Notes: a model not told the origin generated them from the letters alone. Positions 13,819 through 41,290 are shown, numbered from the stretch's first letter. The stretch is 64,000 nt of DNA from Eutreptiella sp. 'Long Island Sound 2002' (GCA_964036045.1 OZ038378.1:194866001-194930000); one strand, 5' to 3'. A program made the numbers and translations.

Positions 13819-13883
13819 ACTAGTTGTGCCTCGTCTCAACTTTTGTTTGCGTCTCCAATGTTTAGGCAGTTTTCCTGTCTTTG
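13819..13883 (+). repeat. Element 1 repeat A1
   Basis: 65 bp ACTAGTTGTGCC...CCTGTCTTTG, identical to 21089-21153. Confidence 0.95.
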
Positions 13884-13896
13884 TTTTTGTTAACCC

Positions 13897-14529
13897 ATGG
13901 ACGGGGTTGAGCAGCCTAATCAGAACCAACAAGAGTCAGCCGAGGAGCGGCTGGCGGCACAAGCCAAAGAAATTCAAGAACTCAGAGAGCAACTCGCCCG
14001 AGTGGCAGTGAAGGAGGGGCCCCGCCTGCCCCCACTGAGCGTGCCAGAAGTAAACCGAGCCCTGGAGAAGCCCCAGTTGGCACAGTGGATGAGACTCATG
14101 CTGTCCAACATCAAGGCGTACGTACGCCTTAGAGCTGGTGAGGTGGGGGAGATCCCCCGACCAAGTGAGTTTGGCGGCCAGGTGACGGAGGCCGCAGTCG
14201 ACCCAGGAGAGCAGCTGGCGTGGAGGGTCTGGGACTGCGTGTCCCAGTCCCAGGCGGCGTATGCCCGCAGGTATGCAGGGACGCACGGGAAATCCAGCTC
14301 CGAGTCCAACCAGTACACCACGCTTGAGGAGGCATGGAAGGAGCAAGGGTCGGAGTTCACGTGGCGGAGCGTGAAATTCAGGGAGGTGGGAGGAGTACTG
14401 CAATGGCAGACGAGGCAGGGCGAGTGGATCCCTGTGGACTCGCCGCCGAGCGGAGGGTGCCAGAGGTGCGCGCAGCGGGGCTCCCCCGACGAACGCCACT
14501 GGCACTTTAGATGCCCACACTGGTCCTGA
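13897..14529 (+). CDS. Gag-like ORF1 (210 aa) with C-terminal CCHC-type knuckle
   Basis: ATG 13 bp after A1, N-terminal coiled coil, CQRC-x9-HWHFRC at the C-terminus. Confidence 0.8.
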   Translation: MDGVEQPNQNQQESAEERLAAQAKEIQELREQLARVAVKEGPRLPPLSVPEVNRALEKPQLAQWMRLMLSNIKAYVRLRAGEVGEIPRPSEFGGQVTEAAVDPGEQLAWRVWDCVSQSQAAYARRYAGTHGKSSSESNQYTTLEEAWKEQGSEFTWRSVKFREVGGVLQWQTRQGEWIPVDSPPSGGCQRCAQRGSPDERHWHFRCPHWS

Positions 14530-16361
14530 CAGGACCGGCTGGAGCCCGGACCGGCCGCCCCGGGCTCCGGCCTTGGAGACACGGCGGCAGAGCTGCGGGC
14601 GCTCGCCCGCCGGTGGGAGACAGCAGCCCGGTCAGACGACCCCTGCTCACCGGAGGAAAGCGCCATGCAGTCCTGGAGACCGAGAACCCGCTCACAGTAC
14701 GCGTCCCGACTCCGGGCCTTGGCGGCCCGCCTGATATGGCCGCGGCACTGGCAGGCCTCCTGGCAGAGCGGGCCCAAGCCGGCACTACAGCGTCGGCCCT
14801 GCGGGGTATTACCTCCGCGGTCCGGGCCGTGGAGGACCTCCAGTGGCTGCCCCCAACAGTCACCACCTTGCACAAAAGGATTGCGGCGGGAGCCGCATCC
14901 TCGGGCTCTCAGCCCTATCTGTCCCCAGCAGGCTTGGTCCAGCTGGTTGAAAAGGCCAGAGACTCCAGGCACGGAGCGGTGTTCAGCGCATTGGCCATCA
15001 TCAGCTGGGTATGCTACCTGCGGGTGGGCGAAGCAGCTGGCATCAGGGTTACTGACCTGGCTATGCCGGGCTTTGTCCAGTTTTGGAACTCCAAGACAGG
15101 GGAGGAGGGGTATACCACCCGCCCCCTGTATAGGTATGCGGACGGCGTCCGGGCGTGGCTTCATGGCCACATGGTTTCGCTGGGCCGATCCTCAGACATG
15201 CTCATCTGGCACTCAGGGGAAGCGGGGTTGGAGGCAGGCATGGCCGAAACCCTGGCGAGCACCGCACACTCCCGAGCCAGGTGGCACGCCCTGCGCAGGG
15301 GAGGCGCCGCAGCGACTTGGGCCCGTAAACCAGACCTCGCCTACTACAAATGGTGGGGCAGATGGCAGAGCACGGCCGTGGCGATGCAATACGGCACCAA
15401 ATGGTCGGACCCGGGAGTCGTTGCCCCTACGGTGCTGCCCGCATGGTCCCGTGACCAGGGGCCTTTGCCGACTCCGGAACGCGTGGGCGTCCTGGCCCTG
15501 TGGGGATCCCCGATGTTCCCAAGTATCGCGAGCGCCCTCAACACCCCGACCAAGCGCAAGCCAAGACTTCCGCGAGGTCAGGAGCTGGAATCCACTGCGA
15601 GCAGCACGCTTGGGGGAGGAGGCGACGGAGACCAAACCGCGACCGAGCTGGAGGAATCCCCAGGGGACGGCTCTGCTGAGGTGGGCCCGGGGCCTGACAC
15701 AGCTCCTACCCTCCCTCCACTTCCTCCTTTGGCCTCTGCCATTGGGCGCGGCGCCGTGTCTCGGGAAGATGCGGGTCAGCTGTGCACGGTGGCGGGGCCT
15801 TTGGTTGCCGTGGGGGGGGGGGCGTGCGGGCCGGGGACGGCAGCCGGGCCCATCAATGTCGATTCCGACGTGGACACCGACGACAACAGCGAGGATTCCA
15901 GAAGCGAGCCCGCTGGCGAATTCGCAGTCGGCAGCGCCAGGGGCTCCCCCGGGCGTCGACAGGCCGGAGTTGCCAGGTTCGTTGGGCGGGAGCGTAAGCC
16001 GTGGTCCTCCAGGGCGGCTGTTGGCCCTGTCAGAGGAGGACCCGCAGCGGGCTCGAAAGCTGGAGTGGTGGGCTGTGTCCACCGCACATACACGGGGCCG
16101 CGTCGCGCTAAGGTGGTCCTGGGTGGTACGCAGGCCGTGCGATCCCGAGCCCCCGCACGCCGTCAAGCTGGGAGACCTCGTTTGGCCCAGCAGATCGGAA
16201 CGCCGCAGCCCAAGCGCATCAAGCTCGGGCAGGGCGGGCATGTCCGGACGCCGGAGGCGCAAGGCCCGGTGGAGGGTGCCTTCGTGGCTGCAGCCGAGCG
16301 TCTCAAGGCCAAGGCTTGGGGGCGGGCGGGCCCAGTGGCGTCGCCCCCCCCCCCTCTGTAA
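14511..16361 (+). CDS. Tyrosine recombinase of element 1 with long low-complexity tail
   Basis: Catalytic set R (YLRVGEA), K (NSKT), HxxR (HALRR), W (WGRW), Y (AMQY). The true N-terminus may be MQSWRPRTRSQY at 14665 in the adjacent frame. Confidence 0.9.
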   Translation: MPTLVLTGPAGARTGRPGLRPWRHGGRAAGARPPVGDSSPVRRPLLTGGKRHAVLETENPLTVRVPTPGLGGPPDMAAALAGLLAERAQAGTTASALRGITSAVRAVEDLQWLPPTVTTLHKRIAAGAASSGSQPYLSPAGLVQLVEKARDSRHGAVFSALAIISWVCYLRVGEAAGIRVTDLAMPGFVQFWNSKTGEEGYTTRPLYRYADGVRAWLHGHMVSLGRSSDMLIWHSGEAGLEAGMAETLASTAHSRARWHALRRGGAAATWARKPDLAYYKWWGRWQSTAVAMQYGTKWSDPGVVAPTVLPAWSRDQGPLPTPERVGVLALWGSPMFPSIASALNTPTKRKPRLPRGQELESTASSTLGGGGDGDQTATELEESPGDGSAEVGPGPDTAPTLPPLPPLASAIGRGAVSREDAGQLCTVAGPLVAVGGGACGPGTAAGPINVDSDVDTDDNSEDSRSEPAGEFAVGSARGSPGRRQAGVARFVGRERKPWSSRAAVGPVRGGPAAGSKAGVVGCVHRTYTGPRRAKVVLGGTQAVRSRAPARRQAGRPRLAQQIGTPQPKRIKLGQGGHVRTPEAQGPVEGAFVAAAERLKAKAWGRAGPVASPPPPL

Positions 16362-16416
16362 GGGTCCCGACAGGGGTGGGAGGGTGCAGGAACAGCCCCC
16401 CCTCTTCCTGGAGTTC

Positions 16417-18311
16417 ATGCAGGCACTCACCCCCCATTTTCACTGGATAGCCAAGCGGGAACGTTGTGGCTTGTGGATGGTTGCGAAGAGGGTGGATTTG
16501 TGGTTGAATAGAGTATTCGATACAGCCGAGGATTTCCGCTTGCAAGGGGCCTTACCCGCTCTCCTGGGCGCCTTGCGCAAGCTCCACCCGGACGCCTGGG
16601 AGGCATGCCTCCATATCAACACCTCCCCCATTCCGCGGTTCATGGGGGGGGTCGAAGATGCCATTTTGGACCGGGGATTGGGGCCGATAGGCTCCCACCA
16701 GCTCCCTGACGATCTGTGGGACGCTGTCGTACCGCCCTTCTATCGCGGAGGGCTCCAGGATTTTGACGTCGAGCGGGAGTGGCAGGACGGGGATAGGGTG
16801 GTCCGAGGGGCAACCAGATGGGTATCACAGCAGGTCCAGAGGATACTGCAGGCGTTGAGCGGGGCGGGGGTCTACGAGGAGACGGCTGACCCCCCCCCCC
16901 CCCCACGTGTTACCCCTTCGTCATCCCCAAATCCTCCGAGAAGGTATCCTTGATCTTGAGTTGCGTCAAGATCAACAAGAGTGACGGGGGCAAGCCCCCC
17001 ACTTTTAGATTGGATTCCTGGGAGGATTTGGCTAGGTCCTTGTCGGCATTCCCGCCTGATGTGGACCTCTACGGCCTCCACATTGACCTCAAAAATGCGT
17101 TCTGGAGCTTTTGCTTGCCCCAGGGTGCGCGCCAGGTTTTTCGCTTCCAGCCCGCCCCCGGGGCTCCGCCTGTGGCGCTGTCGCGCCTACCATTTGGCTG
17201 GAAATACAGCCCCTATCTGTGCCAAACGAGTTTGGCTCGCATTCTCCAGGGGGTACTGCCCCCCGAGATACTCCTTGTGCACTACCTCGATGACTTTTTG
17301 CTCGTCTTCACTGATAGGGAGGTGCTTAGGGAGGCGGGGCGAGTGGCAGTGCGTGCCCTGATCGAGGCTGCGTTCCTCATAAGTCCTAAGAGTGTCCTGG
17401 ACCCGGTGCCTGTGGCGTCATTCCTGGGGAAGGAGCTCGACTTGCAGGCTAGGCAGATCAGGAGCCATGAACAAGCACTGCTCCAGTTGTGGGCGCGATG
17501 GCTGAGGCTGGCGGTTGGCGCAGGCAACGACCGGCACCTCCAAAGCTTCCTGGGTTTGCTGAATTGGCATGTGCGTCCGAGGGGATTGGGTTGCCCTTTC
17601 GCGGCGGGCGCCTACTGCTGGTTGCGCTGGGGTAGGACGGTGGGGGGGGTCAAACAGCCGGCCCAGGGCTTCCCCCTGAAAATGCTGTGCAGCCTCGCAA
17701 CATTGGTGGCGGTGGCGGCCGAGCCCTGGCAGGCACCGGGCGGGGAGGCCTGGCGGCAATTGAGGGCCCTCCAGTTTGGGACCGAGGATAGGCTTTCGCG
17801 ATCCTCTCTGTGGTGCGGGGGCGTCGTCATCTGTGTTGATGGAGCGCGCGATGCGGGGTGCTGGAGGGTGGGGGCGCTCGTGCCGGGGGTGGGTGTGCGT
17901 ACGCATGTGACACCTCCTGCCCGCTTCGCCAGCCAGCAAACCACGGAACTAAGGGGAGTGGCGTGGGCTGTCAGGTTTGCAGTGAGGACAGGACACCGAT
18001 CTGTTACGGTCTGTAGCGACAGTGAGGCGGCCATTGCTCAGGTCCTCAGACTGCGCGCGACTAGCCACCTGACCCACCACCAAGCGGTCCTTCGGTCGTT
18101 GGCTAGGGTCCTGTGGGTATCACGGATCGTGCTCCGCCTCGTGTGGGTGCCCTCGACGCTTCAGCCGGGAGACCCTATGTCCAGGGTGACGTCAGTGTTT
18201 GGAGGCTCATAGGCCAGAGCGGAAGTCGAGGCTTGGTGCACGTGGGATGCATTGCTGGAAAATCTGGGCGAGGCTCGGGTGAGGGGGGTGGTGTGTCTCC
18301 GGAGATGCTAG
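16417..18311 (+). CDS. RT-RNase H of element 1 (frameshift at C-run about 16890, premature TAG at 18210)
   Basis: YPFVIPKS, HIDLKNAFW, LPFGWKYSP, HYLDDFLL, SFLG; RNase H VDGA, QQTTELRG, SDSEAA, WVPSTLQPGDPMSR. Confidence 0.93.
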
Positions 18312-19470
18312 CCCCCTCCCCCCCCCCCCCCCCAGCAGGCCAGCGGATGTCGGTCGGCGAAAATCCCCCCTCCTTTTTGGACACGTCTCCGTCTCGCAAA
18401 CAGGGCAACAACAGCCACCAGACAATGATGATGTACAATCCTTAGCGGACCTACTGGAGGAAGAGGCCCCAGAGCTTGACGAGCCCCCCCTCCCAGAGTC
18501 GCAGCTCACACCACTGCGGCACACAGCGGAAGAGTACAGCACCCCCCCACCCCCCCCCAGAACCCCTCGCCGACCGACACCGTCACAGGACATTGAAGAT
18601 TGCACCCCGGCCAGGAACCCCAAATACCCGAAGAGATTCACACCACACACCGTCGCCTACACGCCACTCTCCAACCTCCGAGCCCGCCTCCCTCACACCT
18701 CATTGGCCACACCGAGCACAGTGCACTGCATGCACACACCGTGGGAGGCGCTGGAACGCAGAACTACATTTCACACCCCCCAACCACCATCACCCATGTC
18801 GCCACGTGTAGCAGCAAATCTGTTGGCAGAACTGCAGCTGGTTGAAATGGACTGGGAGCAGGGACCAAGCCAGGCAGACACCGAAAGCATGCCGTCCTCC
18901 CACACCTCATCAAGGCACACATCGCCAGCGTCACGCATGTCTGACGACGCCTCCACACTGTCCTGCAGCACCATGTGTTCTCACTGCACCACTCCATAAA
19001 CCCAGTGCCCCACATGGGCACCATCAGCGCAACAAACCCACCCAAGCAACCCCCCCCCCCCCCCTGAATGGCTGTGTGTTGAATGTGCGCTAACCAGCAC
19101 CACCAGGGCACAGTGAGCCCGAACCAAGATCCCAGGAGTACCGGCCGAATGGGGCCAGCGTCAAGCAGGTATCCCAGGGACTGACCCTGACCACCATGCA
19201 CGCCACTGACCCTGTAGAGTCAAAGCCCCGCAAACTTGGGTACGACAGTGTACATATGGAAGGTAGGGACAAGCGAACACTGGCGGAAGCACCGGGACAG
19301 TCGCCTAGCAAAAACCCGGACGCACTGCTGTGAACTTGCTGAAGAACAATGGCTGGAAGTGTCTATGGCGGGGACATCCAGCTCAGCCTACCGACCAATT
19401 GAAGCCAGCAGGCCAGCGGCGACAGTGTATGCGCCCTCCATGTAGCAACCCTTTTTTGCTATCCGCACCT

Positions 19471-19980
19471 ATGACCAAGCGTCGGGGCTCGCGTGGGGCC
19501 CACAAGCGACAGGGTTCCCGTGGAGCCCGCCGAAAGGGTCGCCATGGCGGACAGCGGCACCAGCGTTCCGCAGACGCACAGCAGCGCCGGGCGGCGAAGT
19601 GGAGCAGCGTGCTCCGCACCCGCCTCCGCAGCAGGTTGGCGCGCCTGCCCATCCGCCGGGTGCTGCTCGGCAACGGGGTGCGCCTGTGCCCCCAGTGCCC
19701 CCTCCCTGACGACAGGGAGGGGTTTTTGGAACGGGCGGTCCGGGACGTGGCCGCACGCGTGGGAGGCACGCCGCACCGCCGCACGACCCCCGCCGGCCAC
19801 AGCGTCAAACCCCCAGGGCGGCATGCCTGCTGCCAGGTCTGGGAGGTAAGGCTGCCGGAGGGGGTCGCAGTGGTCTCCCTAACGGACTGGAACCAGGGAC
19901 GCAGGGTTGCTGTACCCTATATATGGATCCAAGCCCGGTATGGGCTGGTGTTGCAATTTGCCCGCCTCTTCAACCCGTGA
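19471..19980 (+). CDS. Extra basic ORF inside element 1 (about 169 aa), unknown function
   Basis: ATG-initiated, Arg-rich N-terminus then a CPQC-containing globular-looking half. No family recognised. Confidence 0.4.
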   Translation: MTKRRGSRGAHKRQGSRGARRKGRHGGQRHQRSADAQQRRAAKWSSVLRTRLRSRLARLPIRRVLLGNGVRLCPQCPLPDDREGFLERAVRDVAARVGGTPHRRTTPAGHSVKPPGRHACCQVWEVRLPEGVAVVSLTDWNQGRRVAVPYIWIQARYGLVLQFARLFNP

Positions 19981-20037
19981 GGTCAGCCGGCTGTCGTCGT
20001 CGTCTGTGCCTGCCCACTGCAGTGGGTGCCCCTGACG

Positions 20038-20931
20038 GCTTGGCCGCTGGGTGCTGATTTGGTTTTGTATTTTTGGGCCGCGTCGGTCCGCGTTCCGCTG
20101 GAGCTGACGGCCGGGTGCTGGGACTGGCCGCCTTTTACCGTCAGTGAGACTCACCGACAGTCGTGTTCGCCTGTATCTGCCCTCTGCAGAGGTTGACTCC
20201 GACGGCGTGGCCGCTGGGTGCGCCTGTTTTGTTGTCTTTTTACTTGGTTGGCGGCACGGCCGCTGGGTGCTTTATTTATTCACCTTTTTGGGCCAGCCTC
20301 ACACCGCATCCGGCTGGGACTGACGGCCGGTTGGTGCGATTTGCCCGCCTCTTTGTCCGCAGGGCACGGCGACCGTCGTGATCGCCTGTATCTGCCCGCT
20401 GTGGCGCTGTCCGGGGCGGCATGGCCGCTGGAGGAGTCCGCCGGACGTGGCGCTGCTGATTTAAGCTTGGTGCCCAACACGGCTCCTGCCTTCCCTCCGC
20501 CTCGGCCTGGGGACTGCCATTTGCTGGATTGCTACCTCGGTGCACATCCCTTTGGGGCTGGGGTTAGGTAGTGGACCCTGTGGTGGATACCTGGATACGG
20601 CGGAGACCTTTTTGGGCCTGCTTCACTCCGCGTCCGGCTGGGGCTGACGGCCGGTTGGTGCGATTTACCCGCCTTATTTGTACGTGGGGCACGGCGACCG
20701 TCGTGACCACCTGTGTCTGTCCACTGTGGTGACTGTCCATGGCGGCGTGGCCGCTGGAGGAGTCCGCCGGGGGTGGCGCTGCTGATTTGGGCCCGGTGCC
20801 CGACGCGATTCCAGCCCTCCCTCCACTTCAGCCTCTGGCCTCTGCCATTGAGCGCGGCGCCGTGTCTCGGGAAGATGCGGGTCAGCAGTGCACGGTGGCG
20901 GGTCCCCTGGTTGTCGTGGGGGGGGGGGGGG
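20038..20931 (+). repeat. Degenerate internal direct repeats in the element 1 3' region; the last copy duplicates the YR tail
   Basis: TTTGGGCC...GCTGACGGCCGG recurs near 20070, 20285 and 20610. 20753-20931 matches 15647-15822. Confidence 0.85.
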
Positions 20932-21046
20932 TTGCTTCTGTTGCTTTGCCTTTTGCTTGGTTACTACCTCAGTTCACATTCCTCAGGAGTTGGGATCCGG
21001 ATGTGGGACCTGTGGTGTGGGAACTGGGTACGGCGGAGAATGAATA

Positions 21047-21153
21047 CCCAAGTCCTGTGCAGTTTTCTTGTGCTCTGCTTGTGCAAACACTAGTTGTGCC
21101 TCGTCTCAACTTTTGTTTGCGTCTCCAATGTTTAGGCAGTTTTCCTGTCTTTG
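21047..21153 (+). repeat. Element 1 B1-A2 junction (predicted circle junction)
   Basis: B1 (42 bp) directly abuts A2 at GCAAAC|ACTAGTTG. Confidence 0.95.
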
Positions 21154-21404
21154 CCCGCCCACCCACCCACTGACCGGCTGACCCCCTGAGAGCACCTGCC
21201 CCTTCCTTTCCCTTTTGAAACCGATTCCCTCGGGTAGAGTGGGGGATCTAACCGTGCTGCAGCGTGTGGACCAGGGTATAGGGTCAGGGTCCGTTTCAGA
21301 GTGGGGTCCCGCATCCAGCGGAGTGGTCCGCAGCGCACCCGTCCATACAACCGCCGGTATTCCGGCCTTGGTGATACTTCAGTACTGCCATCCCAAGTCC
21401 TGTG

Positions 21405-21446
21405 CCCAAGTCCTGTGCAGTTTTCTTGTGCTCTGCTTGTGCAAAC
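21405..21446 (+). repeat. Element 1 repeat B2
   Basis: Identical to B1, preceded by an extra 13 bp copy CCCAAGTCCTGTG (21392-21404). Confidence 0.95.
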
Positions 21447-21971
21447 TATGGTAATAGTTGTTTGTCATCTCCACTGCACAACCCAGCATGAGATCGGACA
21501 ATGGAATAGGGGTTCTGTTTGACCGGTTTCAGCTGCTCAAGACCAACCATTGCAGCAGGTGTTTTGGAGCTGTTTCTTCGGTTTGATTGCCTAGTATTCG
21601 GAGTCAGACGAAAGGAAATCATCATCTTGTCTCGAATGCCACATTGCTGATTTTGTGCTTTTGTGCTAGTTCCTACTATCTGCTCCTCTAGGTGCAGTTT
21701 TAGGTGTGTCATTACATGAGCGCACCCACCAGGGCACTGTGTTTCAGCTGGTGTCAGCTCGAAAGCAACCAGTCATTGCTGTGTAATATGTGCGGACATG
21801 CACCATTCATGTGGCTTGCCAAGAGTGCCGGTGCATGGCCAGTCACCTGCCACCACCGGGATGTGCCCAGTACTTTAGTTCCGTCGGAAAAAGAGTTCTG
21901 CTGTAACCCCGTTATCCGCGTCCCTGGCTGTGTTCAGCGTATTTATTTTCTTCACCTTTATTGTCTGTACA

Positions 21972-23093
21972 ATGAGCCAACAGAAACTTGCGACAGCGTG
22001 GATGGAGGCGGACTGGACGTGGGACCGTCTTATCGCAGAGCAGCCGGAGACTCGGGCCACGCTTATAGCGTGGTCAGCCCTAGTGGCTAGGCCCCCGCTG
22101 GCAAAACGCATCCCGCAGGAGCACAGAGCTACGGTGCTGCTGGCATGGTTGGCGACATGGACGAGCTCAAAGAGGGTCAATATGACGTCGCTGGCCAAGA
22201 TCTTCTATGACAATCTCGGGGTCACCGTAGTGTACAGCTCCTTCACATACCATCGAGACGCATTCCTGTTTGGGCTGATGCTGGGCGGGGGCCTGGAGGT
22301 CCAATCGTACGACCTGACGACGGAACAGTCAGTAGCGGCCTTCACTCTGGCGCAACGTCTCTCTGCACGATTTCGACCTTTGGACTGAGCAGTCACGTTG
22401 GACACTGACGCGGCCTAGGACGCGACGAAAGCGGGAGAACCAGCGTTGACAAAGGCCAGATACGATGAACCGTCCGTTAAGAACGCCAAGATCATGCGTA
22501 AGCGTCCGGGGGCCACGCGCTGGACCCAGAAGTTGGCAAAGTCGTGGAGCATTACTTTAAAGGTATGCGAGAATTGCCGGAGGACGGACAGGCCCCAGGG
22601 GATCCGGCGCTGGAGACGCACACAGCTGTGGGAGATGAATTGGCGCAAGAAGTGTGGCATGTGGTGCTGGACTGTGACGATCCGGGCCGTAAGGCTCTGA
22701 AGAGCGCTGACAAGCAAAAACGGCAGAACGCCAAGCAGCAGCTCGAAAGAAGTCAAAAACACAAGGGGAAAGGATCGCGCAGGTCTAGGTGACACTCCGA
22801 CTCGATAGACTCGGACGACACACCAAGCTCCTCCTCCACGGCAACTTCATCCTCGTCGTCGAGCCGAGGCCATCCGAAACGCAGCGACCAGCAGGGAGCG
22901 TCCTCATCGGTCTGGAGCCCGGCAAAGCCCACCATGGTGATCGTCAACGGCAAGGAGCACTTCAGGGGCAAGACGTTGAACAACTTGATTGATTGCTCCA
23001 AACCGCCCCAAACGAAGTGCCGAGTCTGTAAAGCACACCACTGGTATTGGGAGGGGCCCGCATTCGGGTGCCTTGGACCCCGGAAAAAATGAC
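21972..23093 (+). pseudogene. Gag-like region of element 2, interrupted
   Basis: ATG inside A1; several stops and a frameshift; ends with knuckle-like CRVCKAHHWYWEGPAFGC. Confidence 0.65.
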
Positions 23094-24185
23094 TACCACG
23101 AGGAAAAAGCCTCCGGCGTTGGGGCAGGGGCGCTAGGAGGTTCTTGCGAGCTGTCGACCTGCTCAAGTGCGCCAAGGTCGAAGACTTCGGGGTATCCTAT
23201 GCTGCGACGGCCGTGCGAGGCCTCGGCATGCCAACCGTTGAGGGCTACTTGCAGCACCTCTGAAAAATGCGACGGAGGCTGGCGATGCAACCCGGGGAGT
23301 CGGCCAGAGACGTCTTGGAGTCACAAATGCTTTGGGAAGTCCAACAGGGGCACACAGACGCGAATGCTAAAAAGCTGCTCTTAGGATTGCGCCTGCTCGA
23401 AAAATTTGGCTGGATCCCTGCCACAGTGCGTGCCTGTGACTGGCTGTTCATTGACGCCTTTGAAAACGTCCCGCTGCGCAAACAGGAGGGGCGCTCAAAA
23501 CAATGGGCAACCATGGACTGTCTCAAGCAGCTCTGCACTGTCGCCAAAACCCTCCAGGATTGGGAAGTGGTCTCCCTCGCGGCCTTATCCATTGCCTTCG
23601 GACTCGGGATCTCAGAAGCATTCACGGCGGTGCTAGACGAAGGGGTACTCACATTCCACGGCACAAAGGGATAGGCACGAATGCAGCACCCCAGCATGGG
23701 GCCCTGGGCGTGCAAGTGGGGCGACTTCCTCGCCAGGCTGAGGGCTCTCAGCGGGCACCACCCGCATAGGGCGGCGTTCATCACCTCAACGACTCATCTT
23801 GCGGCGGCGTTCGAATCACTGCTGCAAGCGGAAGGGTGCCGTTGCCGCACCATACACTGGCACTCGTGGCGCAGATTCGGGGCTGCGCAATTACAGTCGC
23901 TCTCCATGCCACTGCACCTCATCCAAATCTGGGGCGGATGGTAATCACCGGCCGTTGCCCGCAGGTACGCGACACCGCCCTCCAACTGGACATTTACCAG
24001 AGATGGGCCCATGCCGGGTCCCAGGTGGAAAGACGACAAGCCAAGATGGTACGAGGTACCGTGGCCCTCGACAGCCATCTTTAGCGAATGGATACGCAAA
24101 GCCCTGCAGCCGGACACCACCAACAGCCGACCGGCTAGGATCCGACCACGTGTGAAAGCCGCAAAGCAGCCACGCACATCGTAAA
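23090..24185 (+). pseudogene. Tyrosine recombinase of element 2, inactivated
   Basis: GLGISEA (catalytic R lost), GTKG*, WHSWRRFG, IWGGW*, ARRY; in-frame stops at 23263, 23672 and 23941. Confidence 0.85.
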
Positions 24186-24297
24186 GCTGCTGACAAAGGG
24201 TTGCCCCCCGATTTTGCAGATGTGTTTTGTAAATTAACCAAGCTCCAGGGTATAAACCCGGCCCGCGGGCCCATGATATTCTCTGCTCTTCAGCACC

Positions 24298-26030
24298 TTG
24301 CTATCTCTATTATGGGCCTGCACCATTCCGCGCAAGCGTTGGCCCGTGCTGAGACGTATCCTCGAAACAATCCTCTCGCCTGGCCTTTTTTGTGAATTTG
24401 ATGGTTATTATGACTACCTCCACCAGGGGAGCGAATACGGCCATGAGCCCCAGGTCACCGATGAGGTAGCTGCGAAGGGCCCGGGGGAGGCAGGAAAGGT
24501 GCACATCGCGTATATGGCGTATATGGCGTATATGGCGTCGTCTCATTCTGAGATCTCCGCGGCGTATATAACCGTGCTTCACGCCACGCCCGTCACCAGC
24601 ACATTCGCTCAAAGCATCAGTCAGCGGTCTCTAACATGCTGGAGTCTGTGCGGGTCACCACAAGAGGGCTCCGTCACACTCGGGCTCATGTCACTTCATC
24701 AGTCTTTCTTCATTATAAAAATAAAGAGAAGTGCCGCATGTTGCTCAATGCAGTGCGCATAAATGCTTCCGACCCTTGCCCCCCCCCCCCCCGAAAAATA
24801 CTTCTTCCCACGCTCGGCCACCTCAGCCAAACCATCAGGGGGTCACGCTCTGGCAGGTGGCTCTGCAAGATCGATTTGCAAAACTGCTACTGGAGCATAC
24901 GGCTACCTCGGTCCTGGCACAGGGTATTTGTGGTCGAAGCAAACAACACACGCTATAAATACACGAGGCTTCCATTTGGCTGGAAGCACTCCCCGGCGTT
25001 TTGCCAAAACCTAGTCAAACGCATTGTTGCTTCAGCCCTTTCGCAGCTCCAGGAAAAGGTGGGCCATAAGGTCTATCTTGACGACATCCTGCTGGACTCA
25101 GGCCGGCGGCGCACTCCGATTCAAGGGAGGAGAAAGGTGGTCCAGAATTTTAAACAGGCGGGGTTCATCATCAATGTAAAAAGTGAACTCCGCCCCACAA
25201 AGAGGCTGGGCTTTGTAGGTAAGCTTCTCAACACGCTACGCAAAACTATTACAAACCAGCCTGCGGTGCTTGCTAGGGCATTTCGCATGTGGCTCCGAGG
25301 TGTAGGTGTAGGCACAGGCACCATGTCGGGGTCTGACCTCCTGCGCCTCATGGGACGCATACAGTGGCTGGCGCGCCCGGGCACCCTGTCCTCCTTCCTA
25401 TCAGGTGCTTACCAAGCGGCCTACAGTGGTACCGGGCGATTCACCAGGGGGCTGATACGGGCCACAGGCACTGCCCCGATGTTCGCTCTTTTTCCACAAT
25501 CCTACCGCAGGACACCTGCAGCTAGTGGCGTTACTTACTTTGCGGATGCGGCACCTCCGTGCTCCACCTGCCCATTCTTCACAGTGGGCATCGTGGGACC
25601 CAAAGGGTGTTATCGTTCTCGTCGATGCCCCCGCTAGATTGCGTCCATGCCTCAAGCAGAGCTGTATGGGCTATATATGGCGGCAAAAATCGCTGCATAT
25701 GAAGGGCATGACACCGTCTGCCTGGGTGTCGACAATGATACGGCCCGGCAACAGGCGCTGCAACAGGAAGCAACCACGCACTGTACTGTACAAAACAGAC
25801 TCCTGCGGCGGCTATTTTGGCTTAGGCTCTGGTCTGGCATCAGGATGGTTCTTTTTAGAGTCACCTCGACTGAAAACCCGGCGGATCCCATGTCCCGTGT
25901 GCACTCATTCCCCTCCGTGGCCCAGGCCATGAAAGGGGCGGATGAACGCCTCGCCCTGTGGAAGGCGAGTACTGTGCCTTACAAACACATTCAAATGGTG
26001 GAGGCGCTCCCGTGGTCCACGCGTGTGTGA
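24298..26030 (+). pseudogene. RT-RNase H of element 2
   Basis: KIDLQNCYW, LPFGWKHSP, VYLDDILL, GFVG; RNase H FADAA, QAELYG, VDNDTA, RVTSTENPADPMSR. TAG at 25635. Confidence 0.9.
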
Positions 26031-26043
26031 CGCCCCCCCCCCC

Positions 26044-26478
26044 CCCAGCACCTGGGTCAAAGTCCCGTCCCACGTCACAGTGGAGGGCAACAACGAAGCA
26101 GACCGGCTGGCGGACCTAGGCCGCCTCTCCAGCCCACTACACCCCATACTGCACACACCAAGCACCTTTTCTGATTTTTCACCACCACGGTTTACCCCTC
26201 TCAAGAAGGCACGTTTTGCAGCTACGTCAACACATGATCTGTCTGAGGTCTCACGAAAAATTGTCTTTCAATCTCCAGCAGCAGTACGTTTTTCCTCCGT
26301 CACTGCAAGTGACATCCTCAGATCACTAGACCTGGAGCCTTTATCTGACTCTGACGAGTCGGGTACCATATCAGATTATAGCGACTCTGACACCGTCACC
26401 GCCGACGACGACAGTGACAATGACAGTGCCTACAGCACTGATGTTAGCGACACGAGAAAACGACGCCTCAGCCAGTAG
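26044..26478 (+). pseudogene. LINE 3' fragment (RNase H C-terminus and acidic tail) inside element 2
   Basis: WVKVPSHVTVEGNNEADRLADLGR parallels WVKVPSHVDIAENEQADRLAERGR of the LINE near 37140. Confidence 0.85.
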
Positions 26479-26526
26479 ACTGCTTTCTAAGTTTTGAATG
26501 TTTCTTCCCACAAAGACAGTATGGGA

Positions 26527-26575
26527 GGCAGTGTGGTATAGTGGATAGCATCGTCAGCGATGCTGGAGCCCAGGG
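26527..26575 (+). promoter_or_regulatory. tRNA-like A-box head
   Basis: TGGTATAGTGG (26534-26544) is a consensus A box, followed by hairpin AGCATCG-TCAG-CGATGCT. No clean B box. Confidence 0.4.
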
Positions 26576-31366: not shown

Positions 31367-33118
31367 GTGCTGCATGTACACCCTCCCCTGACATCGGCGG
31401 ATGCGGACGTCAACCAGCTCATTCATGACCAGAAGGATACCATTGCCAGGCAGCAGGAGGCGCTAAGACTCCAGCGTGAGAAACTGGAAGCACACTTTGC
31501 AACAAACAAGCGGTTGAGGGAGCCTGGGAGTACCCCATCCCCGAAAAAAGGGGGTGCCTTTGCTAAAAACATTGTTACGAACGTGGCCCAGGCCAGGCAG
31601 ATCTCAGAACAGGCACGAGAGCCGGCCACTGCCCCCCTCATAGAGCAAAATGAGCAAGAACAATTAGCGTACCAATTCCAGTGGGAGCATTTTTACCAAA
31701 TTTTTCAGGAGGAAACTAGGTTGTCCACAGACAGAAAAGCTGTCCAATGGTCCCAGCTGGCCAAGATGTCGGAACAGCAGATTCGCGAAACTTTCCCTGA
31801 CCCGGATTGTGATGTCATTTTTGTTGTCTCTTACAACGAGGTCCACCAGCTAAAGGAGTTTGGTGATAAGTTCATCTCCACTGCTAGAATCAAAAGGTGT
31901 GACCTGCTCATCGTCTCAGAGGACGACAAGCCCCTCTTCCCCAATGCTGGCCCCTTCCTAGAGAAAACCGTGCCTTGGCACCTTGATGAGGTCTTCAAGC
32001 TAGGGAGGGCAGTAGTCACCATGGGAGGCCCATAACTCTTCTGCTTTGTAGCGACCTCCAGTGCCAGCGGCAGACAGAACAGGCTCGCCGCGACCTTTCA
32101 AAAAAAGAAGCTGTTAGCCCAGGGACTGGGCGCTATCCACTTTGAACTCTCTGTCCCCACTTCGGATGAACCTTGGTATGCAGTAACGGCAGAGGATAAA
32201 GCCATCCCTGGCCTACTTGATGGGCTGGGGAGAAAGGGCCCTCAATGCATCTCAAACCCGCACAGAAACATCCGTGGAGCACGTGTGATATGGCATCAAC
32301 TACAGCCTGAGGACATGAAAGGCATGTTAGCTGCCTACAAGAATTGCCCGTTTTTCGGCATCATGCGCGAGGATGAATTCCCCGGTGATGAGATGGAGAG
32401 CTGCCCACTCGTCCTACAGCTGTTTCCTGAGGCGAATGTCCGCCAGGCAGTGTCTCCATACATGTGGCACATGATCCACTCCTCGCTGACACAGCACCTC
32501 CCAGATGACACATTTGTGTCCATCCAACTGGCTTCCAAAACAAAAGTGAGAGTTGGGCTGAGGGATGTTTCCGCCGCCCAGATGTGGCTTCTCAGAGCCA
32601 AGTTCGAACTGGAGGTAATGGGTCTGAATATCAAAAACGAAAGAACCAACGAGCCGGTCTCTGATTTTGTGGATGGCTCTGACACGGAGAGCACGGCCTC
32701 CAATCAGTCATCCAGGTCCCAGTCTGGCAGGTTGTCCCCAATGGACCAGATGGTCTTTTATGATGTCCCGCCCAGGCTTCAGGAGCCTGACATTCTTCAG
32801 ATGTTTAAAAACAAGGAAAAATCGGTCTTGTCCGCCTCGCGCCTCTCCTGGACTCCAGGGGACATCAGCCTGTCGGCGTGGCAAATCTCTGCTCACGACA
32901 TGATGTCCCTCAACGGTGCGGTGGTCAGAGACCCCGCGAGGAGACAGCCAATGTACATCATCAGTCTCCAACAGTACAATCAGGAAATAGTCGATCAGAG
33001 AAGGAAAGCCAAAGATAGGCGATCAGGTGACACCACCCCGTCTACAACCTCAGCCTCAAGCAATAAGTGGAAATCCTCGTATGTCCAGGTTGTCAGGGCT
33101 AAATCCAAACCACAATGA
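31367..33118 (+). pseudogene. LINE ORF1 (coiled coil, basic tail), one internal stop at 32033
   Basis: Same frame continues across the TAA to the TGA at 33116-33118. The start is probably further 5' across a C-run frameshift. Confidence 0.7.
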
Positions 33119-36100
33119 TGTCTCCCCAACCCCCACCGATCTTCGGTTCACTCTCACTGATGACCCTCAATTCCAACGGCCTTCTCACGAGAGTTAAAAA
33201 AGGAAAAAAACAGGTTACTAAGCTGTCTATTGTCCTACAGCATCTTGCTGCTAATTCCATCGACGTGGCTGCCCTTCAGGAGCCACACATCAAATCGTGG
33301 GAGCAATACTCCCTCATTCGTGACAGATTTGACAGACAGGGTTATCACTTCCTCTCCAATCTCTCCCCCGAGGGTCATGGAGGGGCCGCCATTGTTTTCA
33401 AGCATGGATGGAGATTGGTCAATATGTTCGCCTTGGAACCACGCATCCTCGCGGCGGTCATTGAAAATATTGATGGGCAGCAGCTTTTCGTTGTATCTGC
33501 CCACTTCCACCACAGGGCTAAACTCAGGAAGGCGCAGTGGGACAAGCTTTTGATAAGCCTGCTCCCCTTACAGTATGACAATAAGATTTTGCTTGCTGAT
33601 CATAACTCACTGATTGTCCCGGCCCGTGACTCAGCACCAGTGTTCGAGGACAAGAACACTACCATTGTGGAGTCCCGGGAAACCGAGATCAGGGTCCTAC
33701 AGAAATTGGGTTTCACGGATGCCTACACGGAAGTGCACACTTGTGATTCCAAGCAGGAGCCTAACCCAGGGTTCACCTATGGATTTGGAACCAAGGACAC
33801 ACCACAGGACCATTCCTCTGATTCTGATCTTGAATCAGGGACACACAACCTAAGGAGAATAGACAGAATCCATTTGTCTCAATCCCTGCTCCCGCATTTA
33901 TCTGAGGCTTACGCCTCGTTTGTTGCTCGCGCGGATCACAAAGCAGTGACCGTCTCCTGTAAGCCACCGAATTTTGATGCTATGAGAACCAGACTACGCT
34001 GCCCTCAAGAAATTCTTGAGGATGATGAAGCAGTGGAATCACTAAGACACCATCTATAGGATCTACCTGGGGACTCAAAGGATTGGTGGGACATGGCTCT
34101 GCAGGCCATGCGCTCGGAAGCCAACAGGTATAGCAGGGAACACAGGGCTCCACGTGATTGGAACCTGCTCGGTATCATTCACATTTCATCTGTACACCAG
34201 GTGTGTGCCCAAGGATGGGCATACCTGTCCCAAAACAACTACACACCCCAGTCTGAGTCCGCTGCATACTCACTGCTCGTTGCGATTTTTGAAAAGGACT
34301 CCTCGGACAAAACAGGCTTAAAACTGCTGGCTAAACTTAAAGGCCTGCTGGCTGGGGAAGATCTACAGCAGGATTCCCCAAAGGAGCGCCACCGCCAAAT
34401 AAACAAACTGATGACTGAGCTTCAGCAGCGGAAAAAACTAGGGTGGATCAGGGATAAGACAGGTTAGGTGCTCAATCAGCCTGTGCAGATTGCGGCGGCC
34501 CTGGCTCAGCATTGGGCTGCTATCTCAGTCCCAGGTCAGTAAACCGCAGATGAGTGTCTGTCCTTTTTGAAGGGCATGAGACTGCCTTCCAATTTTTCTG
34601 TTATGGCCAAGGCCCTCCTGAGACCACTTTCTCTTGAAATTGTTGAAACAGCCCTCAGCAACCTCCACAACCAAGTCTCCCCTGGAGATGATGGAATGGG
34701 GGCCCGGTTTTACAAGACCTTTTCGGATATCTTTGTACCCAGAATGTTTGAGGTTGCATCAGAGTGCTTTGAGTCGGGTTCCATCTTTCCAGACTGGGCA
34801 GTTGGACTAATTAACTCTATTCCGAAGTCCACTGGCACTCCGTCGGTTGGCAGGCTCAGACCTATCGCGTTACAGGACGTAAAAAAGAAATGGATCATGA
34901 ATATTGTTTGTCTGATGGTGGAACAAATTTTTCAACGGCTCACGCATCGTAGACAAGTCGGCTGCGTTAAGGGAAGGCATATGATCAACCACATCTGGGC
35001 AGCTCGGTCTGGGTGGGAGGGCATGAGGTCAGGAGTTCTTGTGAGCTTCGATTTTTCGAATGCGTTCCCCACTCTCACACACAACTTTATCACGGCGGTA
35101 TTGCGACTAATTGAACTACCTGAGTGTATCATCTCTTTCATCCTTTTGACCCTGACCGCCCCCTACCACTTCTATGTGGGAAGGGGGGTGGTCAGGGAGG
35201 TGGTGTTCCACCCGGCCGCGGGCATTGGCCAGGGTGACCCCTTCTCGCCCGTGCTCTTCTCCTTTTGTGTCTCCTTTGTATTGTTTGGGTTTGATTCCCT
35301 AATGCATGTGCAAGCATATATGTACGCTGATGACCTTGGAGCCTTGATCCAAGGGCGACATGTATCCTCTATTGTATATGACGTTCTGGAAATGATGAAA
35401 CAATTTGGCATATTTTCTGGTCTTCTGCTCAACCTGGGCAAGTGTGGCATTGTGGTCAAAGGCAATCTCTCCACCAGGGACCAACAGTTGGGGTCCCTGG
35501 ACAGTTGGGGGGTAACACTACGAGAACTGGCGCAGCACCCGGAGTGTGGGGGGTTCCAGCTCCCCACCCCCAAATGTTGGCTTCATGCTCAGTTTGGACT
35601 GTCCTTCCACAAGTTTTTGCAGCACCCTGAAGTTTTCACTGAGACAGTCACCTCCCCCTTCAGAACTTGGTGTGCCAAGTATGGCGTTTGCCTGCATGCT
35701 TGGGCGTGGCCCTACATTCAGCTGGGTCCTGTCCCGTACAAGACATTTGGCTACCTTGCGTATAGCTTGAAATCGTTTTCTATTGCTCGCAGGTACATCC
35801 TTGACGGCCTCGCAGATCCCACGGCTCAGGGACAGTTGCCACTGTGGCACTCGGCGGTTTTCAAAAATGCCAAACAACTCACTTATTACTGCCCGGTCCT
35901 GATAAAGAAGAGCATACTTACAGTCCAGGACCTCTATGGCCTTGACGGACGGATCCCGGCCCACCTGCTCAGCAAAATAGCCCCAACTTGGAAGGTGGTA
36001 TATGAGGTGGGGCTTGCCAATTTTATGCATCACCAGCCCACAGACTGGTCCCCCCCCTCGGTGTGGGTGGGGGCCTGGGCCAAAACGGATACACTCAAAC

Positions 36101-37657
36101 GCCTGGCCCCGGACCCGGAGACAGTCACACGACACTCACCGGCAGTTTGGAAGGCCTTTTGGCGATCGAAGCTGCCGCCCTCCATTGTAGATTTTGTGCA
36201 CCAGGTTCTTTGGCGCAAACTGAAAGTGGCTGAGCGCCTTTCTCCCTGGACGCAGGATTCCAGGTGCCCTGTCTGTGGAACCACTGAAACTATTGATCAT
36301 GCCTTGAATAGCTGCAGGTTTCATATTATCATCTTCGACACACTAGACAAGTGCTGGGACACGGTGGTGGCTGACAACAAGCCGCATGCTGCTCGTTCCC
36401 TCCCACTCCAGACCACGTTCTCCACCCCTTTGGGTATCATGATGTGGACGGCTCTGGCCGCTCACTGGTCATTCCGCAACTCACTGATCAGAGGGGGGAT
36501 TGGCTCCTACGATGGTTTTTTGTCTGTATGGATTAAGTTTGTAGCTCTTCTCGCAGTCTGGGAGCCAATCTCTCGTTATTCTGACGTCTTTTGGCAGTTT
36601 CATAAGTCTTTAAGTCATTTACTCACCCAGGGCTCCCTTATCACCACTAAGATTTGTTTTGAACCCTCAGAGCATGAACGGGAGGAAAGGGCACGGAAAC
36701 GCAGCAAAAAAATGGAACGCAAGCATGAATTGGCAGTCCTGGCCCGAGAAGAAATTGCGTCCTTGCAACAACAAGGATATGTCGTTGTTTATACTGACGG
36801 CTCAGCAGAATGGGTACAGCAGGTGGGATGGGTGGGGGGGGTATGGATGTTATGAACCCACTGAGAAGTGGGAGCACTGCTCTTACCTCCCCCCCCACCT
36901 CAGACAATCCATTAACCGCGCAGAACTACAAGCTGTCATCGATGTAGTGCACCACTACAGGCATAGGACACTGTCGGTTGCAGTTGCAACTGATTCAGCT
37001 TACGTGCATGATGGCCTCCAAGGCAAGGCTATGCAATGGAGGGCCACAGGCTGGGTCACATCAAGGGGACCGGTCATCAATGTAGACTTATGGGAAGAAA
37101 TTTTAGACAAACTTTTACACAGCACTTGCAAGTTCCGGTGGGTTAAGGTGCCTAGTCATGTTGACATTGCTGAAAATGAACAGGCAGACAGGCTTGCTGA
37201 GCGAGGCAGGAAGCTGTCCCCCCTGTACAATACAGTGCACAGGGCTGTGCACCACCCTGTCACCCCGCCTTGCTCCCCCCCGGCACCCAGAATTTGCACT
37301 GACGCCTCCACAGGCCCGCACATGCGCGTGGAAATCACCCCACTCCTGCAGCCAGACGATGTAACCCCCCTCATTGAACGAATGAATCGCACACACACTC
37401 ACCCAGAGGATCCTGTGAGACAGCTTTTTCCGGACGATCCAGGGACAGATTCTGAGGGTTTGGTGTCATCAGATCAGGACAGCCAGTCGGAATGCTCCAC
37501 CATTGAATCACCCAGGCAAGGCATTGTTGATGACTACCTCTCTGATGGTAGTCCGAACGACCGCCCTCTCTCCTCAGATACGAGTTCAGCACGGATGTCA
37601 GCTCCACCAGGAAATGATGGAAGTAGAATCGGACCTGGGAGCATTTTCCCCCCCTGA
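33115..37657 (+). pseudogene. LINE ORF2: AP endonuclease, RT, CCHC zinc finger, RNase H
   Basis: MTLNSNG, ALQEPH, LADHN, RRIDRI, ADHKAV; SPGDDG, RPIAL, SFDFSNAF, GQGDPFSP, YADD; CPVCGTTETIDHALNSC; YTDGS, RAELQA, TDSAYV, NEQADRLA. Several stops, a G-run frameshift near 36840 and a probable deletion near 35490. Confidence 0.95.
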
Positions 37658-37865: not shown

Positions 37866-37990
37866 ATGTGGCGGCTCGCAATGGGTAGTTCTTGTGTTGT
37901 GACAATAAATACTTGGGTTCCATCTAGGAGGATTTTATGCAATATTGCACTGAAGCATCAATGATTTAGCTCCTCTTTGGATAAGAGGCA

Positions 37991-38374: not shown

Positions 38375-38442
38375 TCAGCGAGGAATCGAACCTTCATCTT
38401 CAGGGCAGCGGCTGGCTGCATTGCCGCTGCGGTACACGACCA
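38375..38442 (-). ncRNA. tRNA-like module, minus strand
   Basis: TACCGCAGCGG A-box-like and GGTTCGATTCCT B box on the reverse strand. Confidence 0.45.
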
Positions 38443-38636
38443 AAAGCCCGCATTATGCACCCCTGCTCACAGGAACGCTCTGTCTGAATGGATGGTATGA
38501 ACCAGAGGCTGGGCCTGCGGCTCCCTCACAGCCACGTTATCGCCACAGTGTCTGTAGTTATATGAATGAGATTGAGCCTAACACACACACACACCACTGA
38601 CCCTCTCTCTATGAGTGCTGACGGACGACATGACAG

Positions 38637-38754
38637 GTTGGCCGATTGAGAGCCAGCGTACCGCAAGCCTGTCCAGCCGCCTGTGGACCTCAACCCCCCA
38701 GTACGTTAACATGCAGGCTAGAGGTTTTGGCCGACAAAACACGGCCAGAAAAGG
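38637..38754 (+). CDS. PG-repeat gene exon A (WPIESQRTASLSSRLWTSTPQYVNMQARGFGRQNTARK)
   Basis: ACAG acceptor, GG|GTAACT donor; phase 2 end fits exon B. Confidence 0.6.
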
Positions 38755-39689: not shown

Positions 39690-39864
39690 AATGCCGCAGT
39701 CCAGGTCCCTCCTCACCTCAGAGGCTGAGGCTGTGAAGTATGGCCTTGGCACACGGAGTCCTGGTCCACAATTGCCAGGCCCCGGGTCATATGACCCGTT
39801 CACTGAGGAGATGTCTACCATCAACTACAATCTTACATCAATTGAGGGCTCTTTTCCCAAGGAG
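39690..39864 (+). CDS. PG-repeat gene exon B (...SPGPQLPGPGSYDP...SFPKE)
   Basis: AG/GT ends, 175 nt (1+58 codons), PGPGSY motif. Confidence 0.85.
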
Positions 39865-39868
39865 GTCT

Positions 39869-39869
<1 letters not shown>

Positions 39870-39901
<32 letters not shown>

Positions 39902-39909
39902 GTGTGTGC

Positions 39910-39942
<33 letters not shown>
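39870..39942. repeat. (TC)n(TG)n compound microsatellite
   Basis: Directly visible just after the exon B donor. Confidence 0.95.
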
Positions 39943-39943
<1 letters not shown>

Positions 39944-40828
39944 CTCTCCCGCCCTCCATCCATCCCTCCCTGCTTCCCTGCTCCCGGCCTGCCCCCATCT
40001 GCTCCTTTCCCTATGGAGGATGATGGGGAACAGCCATTGGCAGGCATCCTAAACTTCACAGGACATGGGAGAGCCCCCTCCTCAAATGGTGCTGGTGCCA
40101 GTAGACGAGTGCAGCATCAACCCGGTGCGATCCTTTGGCCCAGGGGTCATTGCTGATTACAGGGAGGATCAGGGCCCATTCAGTTGTGCAACCATCCCAG
40201 GCCTTTGCTTCGTGAAATGAGGTTCTGGCTCATTTATCCCGCCTCAGCTGAAGAGGTAGGAACCATACAGCAATCCTGCCATGGGCAGCGCCCAACTGAC
40301 TTTGACCCCCCTCCCCTCCTCCCCTCCTCTCAAATGGCCCACATCTTTAGAATGTCTGGTCCCAATCCCCCCCAAAAAATTCTATTGCCTTCGGCAAGTC
40401 CACCTCGCAGAGAATCTACTCCAAGCAACACACACCCAAAATAGGGTAAAAACTACATAAATACGGGCTAAACCATGCTTTAGATATCTTGGATGGTCAT
40501 TTTAGGTGATCACGGTATCAAAAAAATAAGTTTCAAAAACTTCGATTTTTGAGCTGGCCACGGTGAAAAACTGCATAAGCAGGTTGTGTACCAATCCCTT
40601 GGGAGGACCCCCCCCCCCCCTCCCCGCACCCAATACCCATATAGATCAATCCAGCCGACCCCCTGGGTAGAATATATGACTTCTTAGGATGGTCACAGGT
40701 GATGGCGGCCGCTGAGTGCAGCAAAAAATCGTGGGGTAAGAGTCCAGGACAATTTGGTGGTTTCTCTCCCTCCCGTCCTTCCACCAGGGTCGCGGGGTAA
40801 CGTGGCCGAGCTCGCATTGCTCGCCGTA

Positions 40829-41290
40829 GTGCAGAAGAAGTCATAAGCGACTTGGGCTCTGCTCCTGCATTGCGTGCATGCTTGATGCGTTGGGGAATGC
40901 GAGGGACGCATCACGCTGAGACCACGGAACTGTAGTTCCGCAGGAACGACAGTTCCGTGCGTTGGAGTGGGGCGGGCAGGGGTGGCATACTGGGTGGGAT
41001 CCCCCCCCCCCTGCCTTGTATCTTTGCCGAATTTGTTTGTGCCCTCCTTATCGTGCCTACCCGCCCACCCGCCCACGAGGCATCAAAGTCCAGGCCACTA
41101 AGTGCCTGGGGATCGCACAATCCAGCGAGTTAGTCCTCCATCTATGTACTCGTGCTGGGAACTGTGCAGAAGAAGAAGTGTGCAGAAGAAGCCATAAGCG
41201 ACTTGGGCTCTGCTCCTGCGTTGCGTGCATGCTTGACGCGTCAGGGAATGCGAGGGACGCATCACACTCGCGCCGCGGAGACCACGGAAC
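40829..41290 (+). mobile_element. Right end (B1-A2-B2) of a third YR retrotransposon, body absent
   Basis: B1 40829-40930 resembles B2 41180-41290, both ending GAGACCACGGAAC. B1 is followed by TGTAGTTCCG, as at the element 2 junction. Confidence 0.75.

Follow-up and report, generated by a model that had tools for sequence, protein, structure and literature searches.

The 64-kb stretch of DNA analysed here (the window; 64,000 nucleotides, GCA_964036045.1 OZ038378.1:194866001-194930000) comes from the 2.28-Gb genome of Eutreptiella sp. 'Long Island Sound 2002', whose chromosomes reach up to 200 Mb. It contains retrotransposons coding for a tyrosine recombinase (YR) and carrying split direct repeats in the layout A1, B1A2 and B2. 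The junction between B and A folds into a compact, covarying two-stem hairpin in every family, and the crossover of integration lies at the same structural position of this hairpin throughout. We see about an even chance that the B/A junction is an att-like recombination site that functions as a conserved hairpin, folded like an integron attC site and exchanged on the coding strand. The established part of this picture comprises the architecture, the crossover position, the single boundary class, insertion without target-site duplication (TSD), the covariation of the hairpin and the intact catalytic motifs of the recombinase.

Crossover position and insertion sites

Element 1 (family 1; positions 13818–21446, + strand) is a complete split-direct-repeat YR retrotransposon, as seen from self-BLAST, open reading frames (ORFs) and Pfam matches to reverse transcriptase (RT) as well as to an RNase H-like domain (RH). 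Its order is A1, a gag-like gene, YR, RT/RH, repeats, B1A2, Y and B2. By self-BLAST, A1 (13818–13883) is 100% identical to A2 (21088–21153) and B1 (21047–21088) is 100% identical to B2 (21405–21446), all on the + strand. B1 has AAC as its last three bases, at the crossover (21088), and ACTA and then GTT come next. The C at 21088 is common to B1 and A2, the first base C of A1 is common with the target, and the C at 21446 is the right end of the element.

The crossover was mapped in 20 further family-1 copies and on the A1 sides of ten family-3b copies. In family 1, C stands directly before ACTA-GTT in 20/20 left flanks; the target has A or T at position −3 throughout and in no case G at position −2. 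The right ends read ..AAAC and then pass into unrelated flanks (22 distinct), none of which begins with the ACTA of the element. Family 3b shows a final C in all ten left flanks and AC in eight of them, and its B2 ends are all GGAAC followed by unrelated flank. A seed-independent recount found C and ACTA before all 50 family-1 A copies, and C and TGTA before 20/20 family-3b A copies (C and TATA in one). No TSD is present in the 20 family-1 and 10 family-3b insertions. A second exchange 4–6 nt away over heterologous spacers would create a second insertion class with the spacer at the right end. This class is found in 0/50 family-1 and 0/20 family-3b copies, contrary to what two exchanges around a 4-nt spacer would predict. 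The four bases after AAC were also considered as a heteroduplex 'coupling sequence', and this was rejected: the left end always has the element's own four bases and the right end never has them.

Empty sites agree with these boundaries. For one family-1 copy (L033), contigs from two public runs join 3126 to 8192 with 4 ambiguous bases and lack exactly the element. In the window, an uninterrupted paralogue of the element 1 target lies at 8385–8420 (+ strand; flank BLAST and sequence reading), where the left flank runs straight into the right one across ..GTATC and nothing is duplicated or lost. This empty paralogue and the filled copy differ in two bases just after the C; they match neither partner's core, and we read them as probable divergence between paralogues. 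The elements start after C and end in ..AAC, without TSD and with matching empty sites, which bears out the proposal in the initial annotation that the B/A junction is the point of recombination.

Junction hairpin

Further families were reached through recombinase homologues in an ENA assembly of this genome or of one very close to it. Four loci (L064, L067, L069 and L073), truncated or embedded in satellites, have no usable B1A2 junction and were left out. The nine families counted are 1, 2, 3, L063, L065, L066, L068, L072 and L074.

In every family the last 5–9 bases of B pair with a segment 20–35 nt inside A to form an outer stem. This stem encloses a small, roughly symmetric internal loop (2×2 to 4×4) and then an inner stem-loop, and the whole hairpin spans the last 5–9 bases of B and the first 30–40 bases of A. 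Folding as single-stranded DNA gives the same architecture in 11 junctions of the nine families, with z-scores from −3.5 to −7.1. In 11/11 representatives, 0–2 nt separate the crossover from the 3' end of the outer 5' arm.

The family-1 hairpin occupies 21083–21120 on the + strand (DNA fold −9.2 kcal/mol, z −3.5). Its outer stem pairs 21083–21088 with 21115–21120, the internal loop is formed by 21089–21092 and 21111–21114, and the inner stem pairs 21093–21096 with 21107–21110. The crossover is at the 3' end of the outer 5' arm, and A1 of element 1 holds the 3' three quarters of the hairpin. In element 2, the family-2 hairpin covers 27712–27746 (+ strand; −7.7 kcal/mol, z −4.2), with outer stem 27712–27718 and 27740–27746, inner stem 27723–27727 and 27731–27735, and crossover after 27718. 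The family-3 hairpin of element 3 lies at 40923–40959 (+ strand; −17 kcal/mol, z −7.0) and is also visible as a self reverse-complement match. Here the outer stem pairs 40923–40930 with 40952–40959, the inner stem pairs 40935–40939 with 40943–40947, and the crossover comes after 40930. Three outer-stem pairs are compensatory between family 2 and element 3.

The outer stem was examined in an alignment of 16 sequences. Over its seven pairs, 97.3% of cells are paired, while sliding the stem partner as a control leaves only 33–44% paired. Both sides have changed in four of the seven pairs (23 cells). Covariation scores 0.539, compared with 0.19 in shuffled alignments, and none of 500 shuffles reaches the observed value. 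In L066 and L068 the inner stems have quite different sequences and still pair, which separates the hairpin from a mere repeated binding motif. Among the outer-stem cells that are not Watson–Crick, the coding strand has eight G·T and one A·C. The direction of this bias suggests a folded single strand of coding sense.

About 20 nt 3' of the hairpin, four families of the element 1 clade have a pyrimidine-rich run followed by (C/T)AG-GCAGT. The run is found at 13850–13875 and 21120–21145 in the window, from 8280 in L063, from 12440 in L065 and from 12770 in L066. Lying just upstream of the gag ORF, it looks like a 3' splice acceptor, and it is absent from the family 2/3 clade.

The AAC-N4-GTT palindrome and kinship of the families

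The initial annotation described the junction as a short palindrome, AAC and GTT around a four-base core ending in TA, shared by three families. The three junction sequences it quoted are all present in the window where it had placed them. The short motif by itself means nothing: AACNNNNGTT occurs 17 times in the 64-kb window against 14.7 expected. Its significance comes from its registration with the crossover, because the chance of the motif at a given position is about 2.7e-4 and it is found at the independently mapped crossover in seven of the nine families. B terminates in AAC in 8/9.

Outside the window, the motif is present in L063 (CAAAC, CCTT, GTTTG; recombinase 46% identical to family 1), L065 (CAAAC, CCTT, GTTTT; 44% to family 1), L072 (AAAAC, CGAA, GTTTT; below 30% to any family placed here) and L074 (AAAAC, GACT, then GTT in A1 and GCT in A2; 36% to its nearest family). 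It is missing from L066 (41% to family 1), where the B end is GGGAAAC and GTT is absent four bases on, and from L068 (35% to family 1), where the B end is GCAAAA. The palindrome is therefore kept across families whose recombinases are only 28–46% identical, though not in all of them. Its core is not conserved: it ends in TA only in the three junctions first quoted and reads CCTT, CGAA, GACT, TCAC or TCTT elsewhere. Neither is the palindrome itself the conserved unit, as L066 and L068 lack it yet keep the junction-spanning two-stem hairpin with its covariation. The motif appears because the pairs flanking the internal loop are AAC/GTT in most families. With such pairs on both sides of the loop, most families have two successive AAC-N4-GTT palindromes, and the initial annotation saw the first.

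The count of three families also needs adjustment. Elements 2 and 3 have homologous junctions, and the RT of family 3b is 45–58% identical to that of element 2, making these two elements kin. Element 1 is a separate deep lineage, with an RT that is 29% identical and a YR detectable by profile only. Judged by sequence, the window holds two deep lineages, not three independent families.

Word-index sequence searches gave no relatives with names; their matches were all unnamed ENA proteins from a single assembly. An exhaustive profile search gave 720 unnamed matches, a few of them from other samples and on short contigs without element ends, and a scan of metagenome contigs for relatives found none.

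Proposed mechanism and alternatives

In the mechanism that we propose, the element-encoded tyrosine recombinase would cut the coding (+) strand at the closing AAC of the outer stem, either between AA and C or after AAC, the C being common with the target. The cut strand would then be joined to a loosely defined target, W-H-C in family 1 and mostly A-C in family 3b. No more than this one strand exchange would leave a trace, and only the adjacent C would have to match. The intermediate would probably be resolved by replication or by host enzymes, as in integron attC × attI recombination or in CTX phage. Action of the recombinase on a folded strand, the choice of bond and the resolution of the junction are the conditional parts of this scheme. 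Tyrosine recombinases require an arm-then-cut geometry. The coding strand has it (..AAC, then spacer), and on the other strand the mapped crossover would be non-canonical. More broadly, eukaryotic split-direct-repeat YR retrotransposons may integrate through an integron- or CTX-like pathway, with the joined ends folded on the coding strand into a stem-bubble-stem hairpin, a recombinase that reads structure and not sequence, one-strand exchange at AAC, a nearly arbitrary ..C target and completion by replication. We offer this generalization tentatively and hold it at less than an even chance.

Several points weigh against the folded-strand reading. The single-stranded or cruciform substrate is inferred, and the first cDNA strand is the minus strand, while the mapped exchange is on the plus strand. 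The G·T excess is equally compatible with an RNA structure. The predicted hairpin folds contain no conserved bulged (extrahelical) bases of the kind that set the strand choice in attC, and one family-2 left flank (L025) has a final T, not C. The AlphaFold model of the recombinase is of only moderate quality (predicted local distance difference test score, pLDDT, 63), and its HxxR..Y region is poorly modelled. One genome or assembly is the source of all families, which makes this conservation within a single host lineage, and they share ancestry and so are not independent trials.

A duplex model that follows the initial annotation takes AAC-N4-GTT as an ordinary palindromic core site: two monomers bind the arms of a duplex circle, which recombines with an equally duplex target in the canonical two steps. 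The other palindrome, in A, would then be an accessory binding site and the hairpin potential a by-product of site symmetry. Registration of the motif with the crossover in seven of nine families and the AAC at the B end in eight are what this model predicts, and a cut between AA and C would give a C-N4-G overlap of 6 bp, a normal spacing. The left arm of the target is weakly similar to the B end, +4/+5 of family-1 targets is G in about 45%, and the published DIRS model treats the circle as duplex (PMC3266345, PMC7192593). The duplex core site fits less well with L066 and L068, where the short palindrome is lacking, the outer arms are more than 20 bp apart and unrelated inner stems still pair. 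Two exchanges over heterologous overlaps of 4–6 bp should leave two boundary classes after replication, and one is seen. The 8:1 bias of G·T over A·C on one strand is also unexpected from protein-binding symmetry. We regard the duplex model as rather improbable.

Alternatively, the hairpin may be mainly an RNA or replication signal at B1A2, serving packaging, priming or template switching, with the recombination point set by the short AAC/C homology. The sense-strand wobbles are G·U-compatible, replication of DIRS-1 requires its internal junction copy (PMC7192593), and a 3-bp junction model is already published (PMC3266345). The retrocopy-like element 2 of the window, described below, starts ≤2 nt from the start of A, suggesting a transcript start there. 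Against such a signal stands the crossover itself, at the end of the outer 5' arm in all nine families with differing stem sequences; this constancy is difficult to account for if the recombinase reads neither the structure nor its arms. In addition, recombination alone, and not RNA ends, fixes the A/B boundary. This explanation appears unlikely. Chance resemblance, or inheritance from a common ancestor without function, is very improbable. The motif is indeed common in the window and elements 2 and 3 share ancestry, but the crossover registration is exact although the A and B repeats are otherwise unalignable and the recombinases have diverged as far as given above, and the compensatory stem changes in the covariation test and the folding z-scores down to −7 contradict it.

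Comparison with known systems

To our knowledge, there is no biochemical demonstration of how DIRS-order retrotransposons integrate; in the accepted view, a duplex circle recombines by way of about 3 bp of identity. In DIRS1-like elements, the circle junction is 3 bp (AAT, AAC, AAA or AAG), complementary to the NTT termini (PMC3266345, restated in PMC7192593), and its partner is a target triplet of the same sequence, which is not duplicated (Piednoel et al. 2011, PMC3266345; model of Cappello, Goodwin and Poulter). Single-stranded cDNA intermediates are reported for DIRS-1 (PMC7192593), and the proposed mechanism is consistent with them. The elements described here are similar in having an AAN trinucleotide at the junction templated by an internal copy, a short matching target, no TSD and a self-complementary junction. 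They differ in having split direct repeats, whereas DIRS1-like elements have inverted terminal repeats and internal complementary regions; in sharing only C (sometimes AC or AAC) with the target; and in having a compact covarying two-stem hairpin of 35–45 nt in place of long inverted terminal repeats. The suggestion in the initial annotation that this att site was undescribed holds only in part. A 3-bp AAN circle junction, AAC included, is already known for DIRS1-like elements (PMC3266345), while a description of the junction hairpin was not found in the accessible literature. For VIPER/TATE, Ngaro and nematode PAT elements, the accessible papers set out the A1-B1A2-B2 layout and mention neither palindrome nor hairpin at the junction, a set to which Goodwin and Poulter 2004 and Poulter and Goodwin 2005 do not belong.

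The A1 ... B1A2 ... B2 layout is that of VIPER/TATE, Ngaro and PAT, and the gene order gag–YR–RT/RH is that of VIPER (PMC6681497). Ngaro has RT/RH before YR, unlike elements 1 and 2, in which YR comes first. The host, a eukaryote of 2.28 Gb, is not a trypanosomatid as for VIPER/TATE, and VIPER/TATE is a candidate assignment based on gene order and repeat layout only. The predicted RT with RNase H, the predicted YR and TSD-free insertion place the elements in the DIRS order in its broad sense.

Integron attC sites are palindromes with AAC/GTT boxes and an unpaired central spacer, cut at the AAC of one folded strand and resolved by replication (Bouvier et al. 2009, PMC2727003). The B/A junction resembles attC. 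It is an imperfect palindrome with AAC/GTT triplets in the outer box, an unpaired spacer between paired boxes and a variable terminal loop; the crossover is at AAC of one strand, with little sequence demand on the partner and one visible exchange. It is unlike attC in that it belongs to a eukaryotic retroelement, its recombinase shows no IntI-specific similarity, its predicted folds have no conserved extrahelical bases, the site is made by joining element ends, and the single-stranded substrate is putative. The CTX phage attP(+) site, recombined with XerCD, offers a similar comparison for the B/A junction. A full-text literature search linking these elements to attC gave nothing relevant.

If the strand does fold, the junction would be a eukaryotic counterpart of integron cassette recombination. 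This would explain TSD-free integration of low specificity and would connect integration with the single-stranded cDNA of DIRS. Should the strand not fold, the junction remains a well-defined att site, used by a recombinase that makes very loose demands on its target. The families are very young and abundant (copies 95–100% identical, with intact recombinase), and together with base-level mapping of the junction, matching empty sites and a hairpin that covaries they bring the question to the level of oligonucleotides.

Encoded proteins

On the + strand of element 1, a gag-like ORF (13897–14529, from ORF calling) is followed by the tyrosine recombinase ORF (14511–16361, with the catalytic part at about 14691–15530; conserved motifs and fold matches) and by the RT/RNase H-like ORF (16950–18212; PF00078 with 2.7e-12, PF13456 weak). 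The order gag–YR–RT/RH is thus seen in element 1, and in element 2 the YR pieces (23264–23941, + strand) also lie upstream of the RT (24636–25961, + strand; PF00078). The recombinase residues R, K, H-x-x-R, W and Y are kept across an alignment of 13 homologues with identities down to 27%. The Pfam search of the recombinase ORF gave no match at threshold, and its profile gave none against PDB sequences. Compared with known folds, the structure model has as its top matches exclusively Cre, lambda Int, XerA/D/H and IntI, which are weak (E 4e-3), and its neighbours in a protein language model are Phage_integrase (PF00589) clusters. No IntI-specific similarity was detected in the PDB profile search or the fold matches. 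From its intact catalytic motif set, the ORF is predicted to encode a tyrosine recombinase and not a DDE integrase. A methyltransferase domain was not detected in these elements, and the Rfam scan of the window gave no match.

Other features of the elements and the window

Element 2 (family 2; 21874–27943, + strand) is a degenerate copy with A1, YR pieces, RT, the B1A2 junction and part of Y. Its A1 (about 21874–21981) and A2 (27714–27826) are 90% identical by self-BLAST, which found no B2 in this copy. Two relatives of element 2, L022 and L023, show the full A1/B1A2/B2 layout, and B2 in L023 ends in GCAGAAC. The layout is also complete in L065, L066, L068, L072 and L074. The window copy of element 2 has a flanking direct duplication of 16–17 bp (21857–21873 and 27923–27960) that is single-copy in the uninterrupted paralogue at 8852–8890. 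Besides having an (ATGAA)n tail, this copy is without B2, and its first base falls no more than 2 nt from where A starts. It is probably a LINE-style (long interspersed nuclear element; target-primed) retrocopy of a YR-element transcript, in which case the 5' end of the RNA would fall at the first bases of A.

Element 3 is a 3' terminal fragment of 645 bp (40646–41290, + strand), the only part homologous to the family-3b copies of about 5 kb. It holds the end of the internal region, B1, A2, Y and B2, and A1 is absent. B1 (40829–40930) equals B2 (41180–41290) by self-BLAST. In its junction, B ends in GGAAC at 40930, followed by TGTA and GTTCC. Long inverted repeats are absent from 12000–43000, and by self-BLAST the element repeats are direct.

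Elements 1 and 2 are in the same orientation, 427 bp apart, within a single copy of a host repeat, which is present again, without interruption, 5 kb upstream (8385–8990, corresponding to 13700–13817, 21447–21873 and 27944–28060). Between elements 2 and 3, at about 31367–37657, there is a non-LTR (long terminal repeat) retrotransposon, separate from element 3. Its RT/endonuclease ORFs at 33115–37657 mark it as a LINE, with endonuclease/exonuclease/phosphatase, RT, zf-RVT and RNase H domains from Pfam.

Family 1 is very young and abundant. It has at least 40 identical junction copies and about 6700 YR candidates genome-wide at first look, and the best 138 of these show 94–100% identity. The A1-to-A2 spacing among its copies ranges from 4.7 to 7.3 kb. 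In element 1, the 3' untranslated part (19970–21040) contains repeats that are about 325 bp long, as well as a copy, at 20753–20928 and 86% identical, of a 176-bp piece of the recombinase ORF (15647–15822). At L033 (3000–8300), estuary metatranscriptome contigs from runs X15 and X16 cover parts of family 1 at 92–99% identity, plus the empty flanking repeat; they are compatible with family-1 transcription, with DNA carry-over as another possible source. Another family-1 copy (L050, reverse-complemented) has extra internal B/A junctions, with A copies at 533, 5848, 6296 and 7849, and is possibly a partial multimer or a product of recombination between junctions.

At L063, positions 3745–11861 form a head-to-tail tandem array of 3609-bp units, two full and one partial, with a B/A junction at every unit boundary and no separate Y segment. 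Tandem repeats surround three elements of different families (L064 7723–13025, L073 7139–10325 and L066 6994–13144): an 85-bp satellite in two cases and a repeat of about 1325 bp in the third. The elements may prefer satellite DNA or survive better there.

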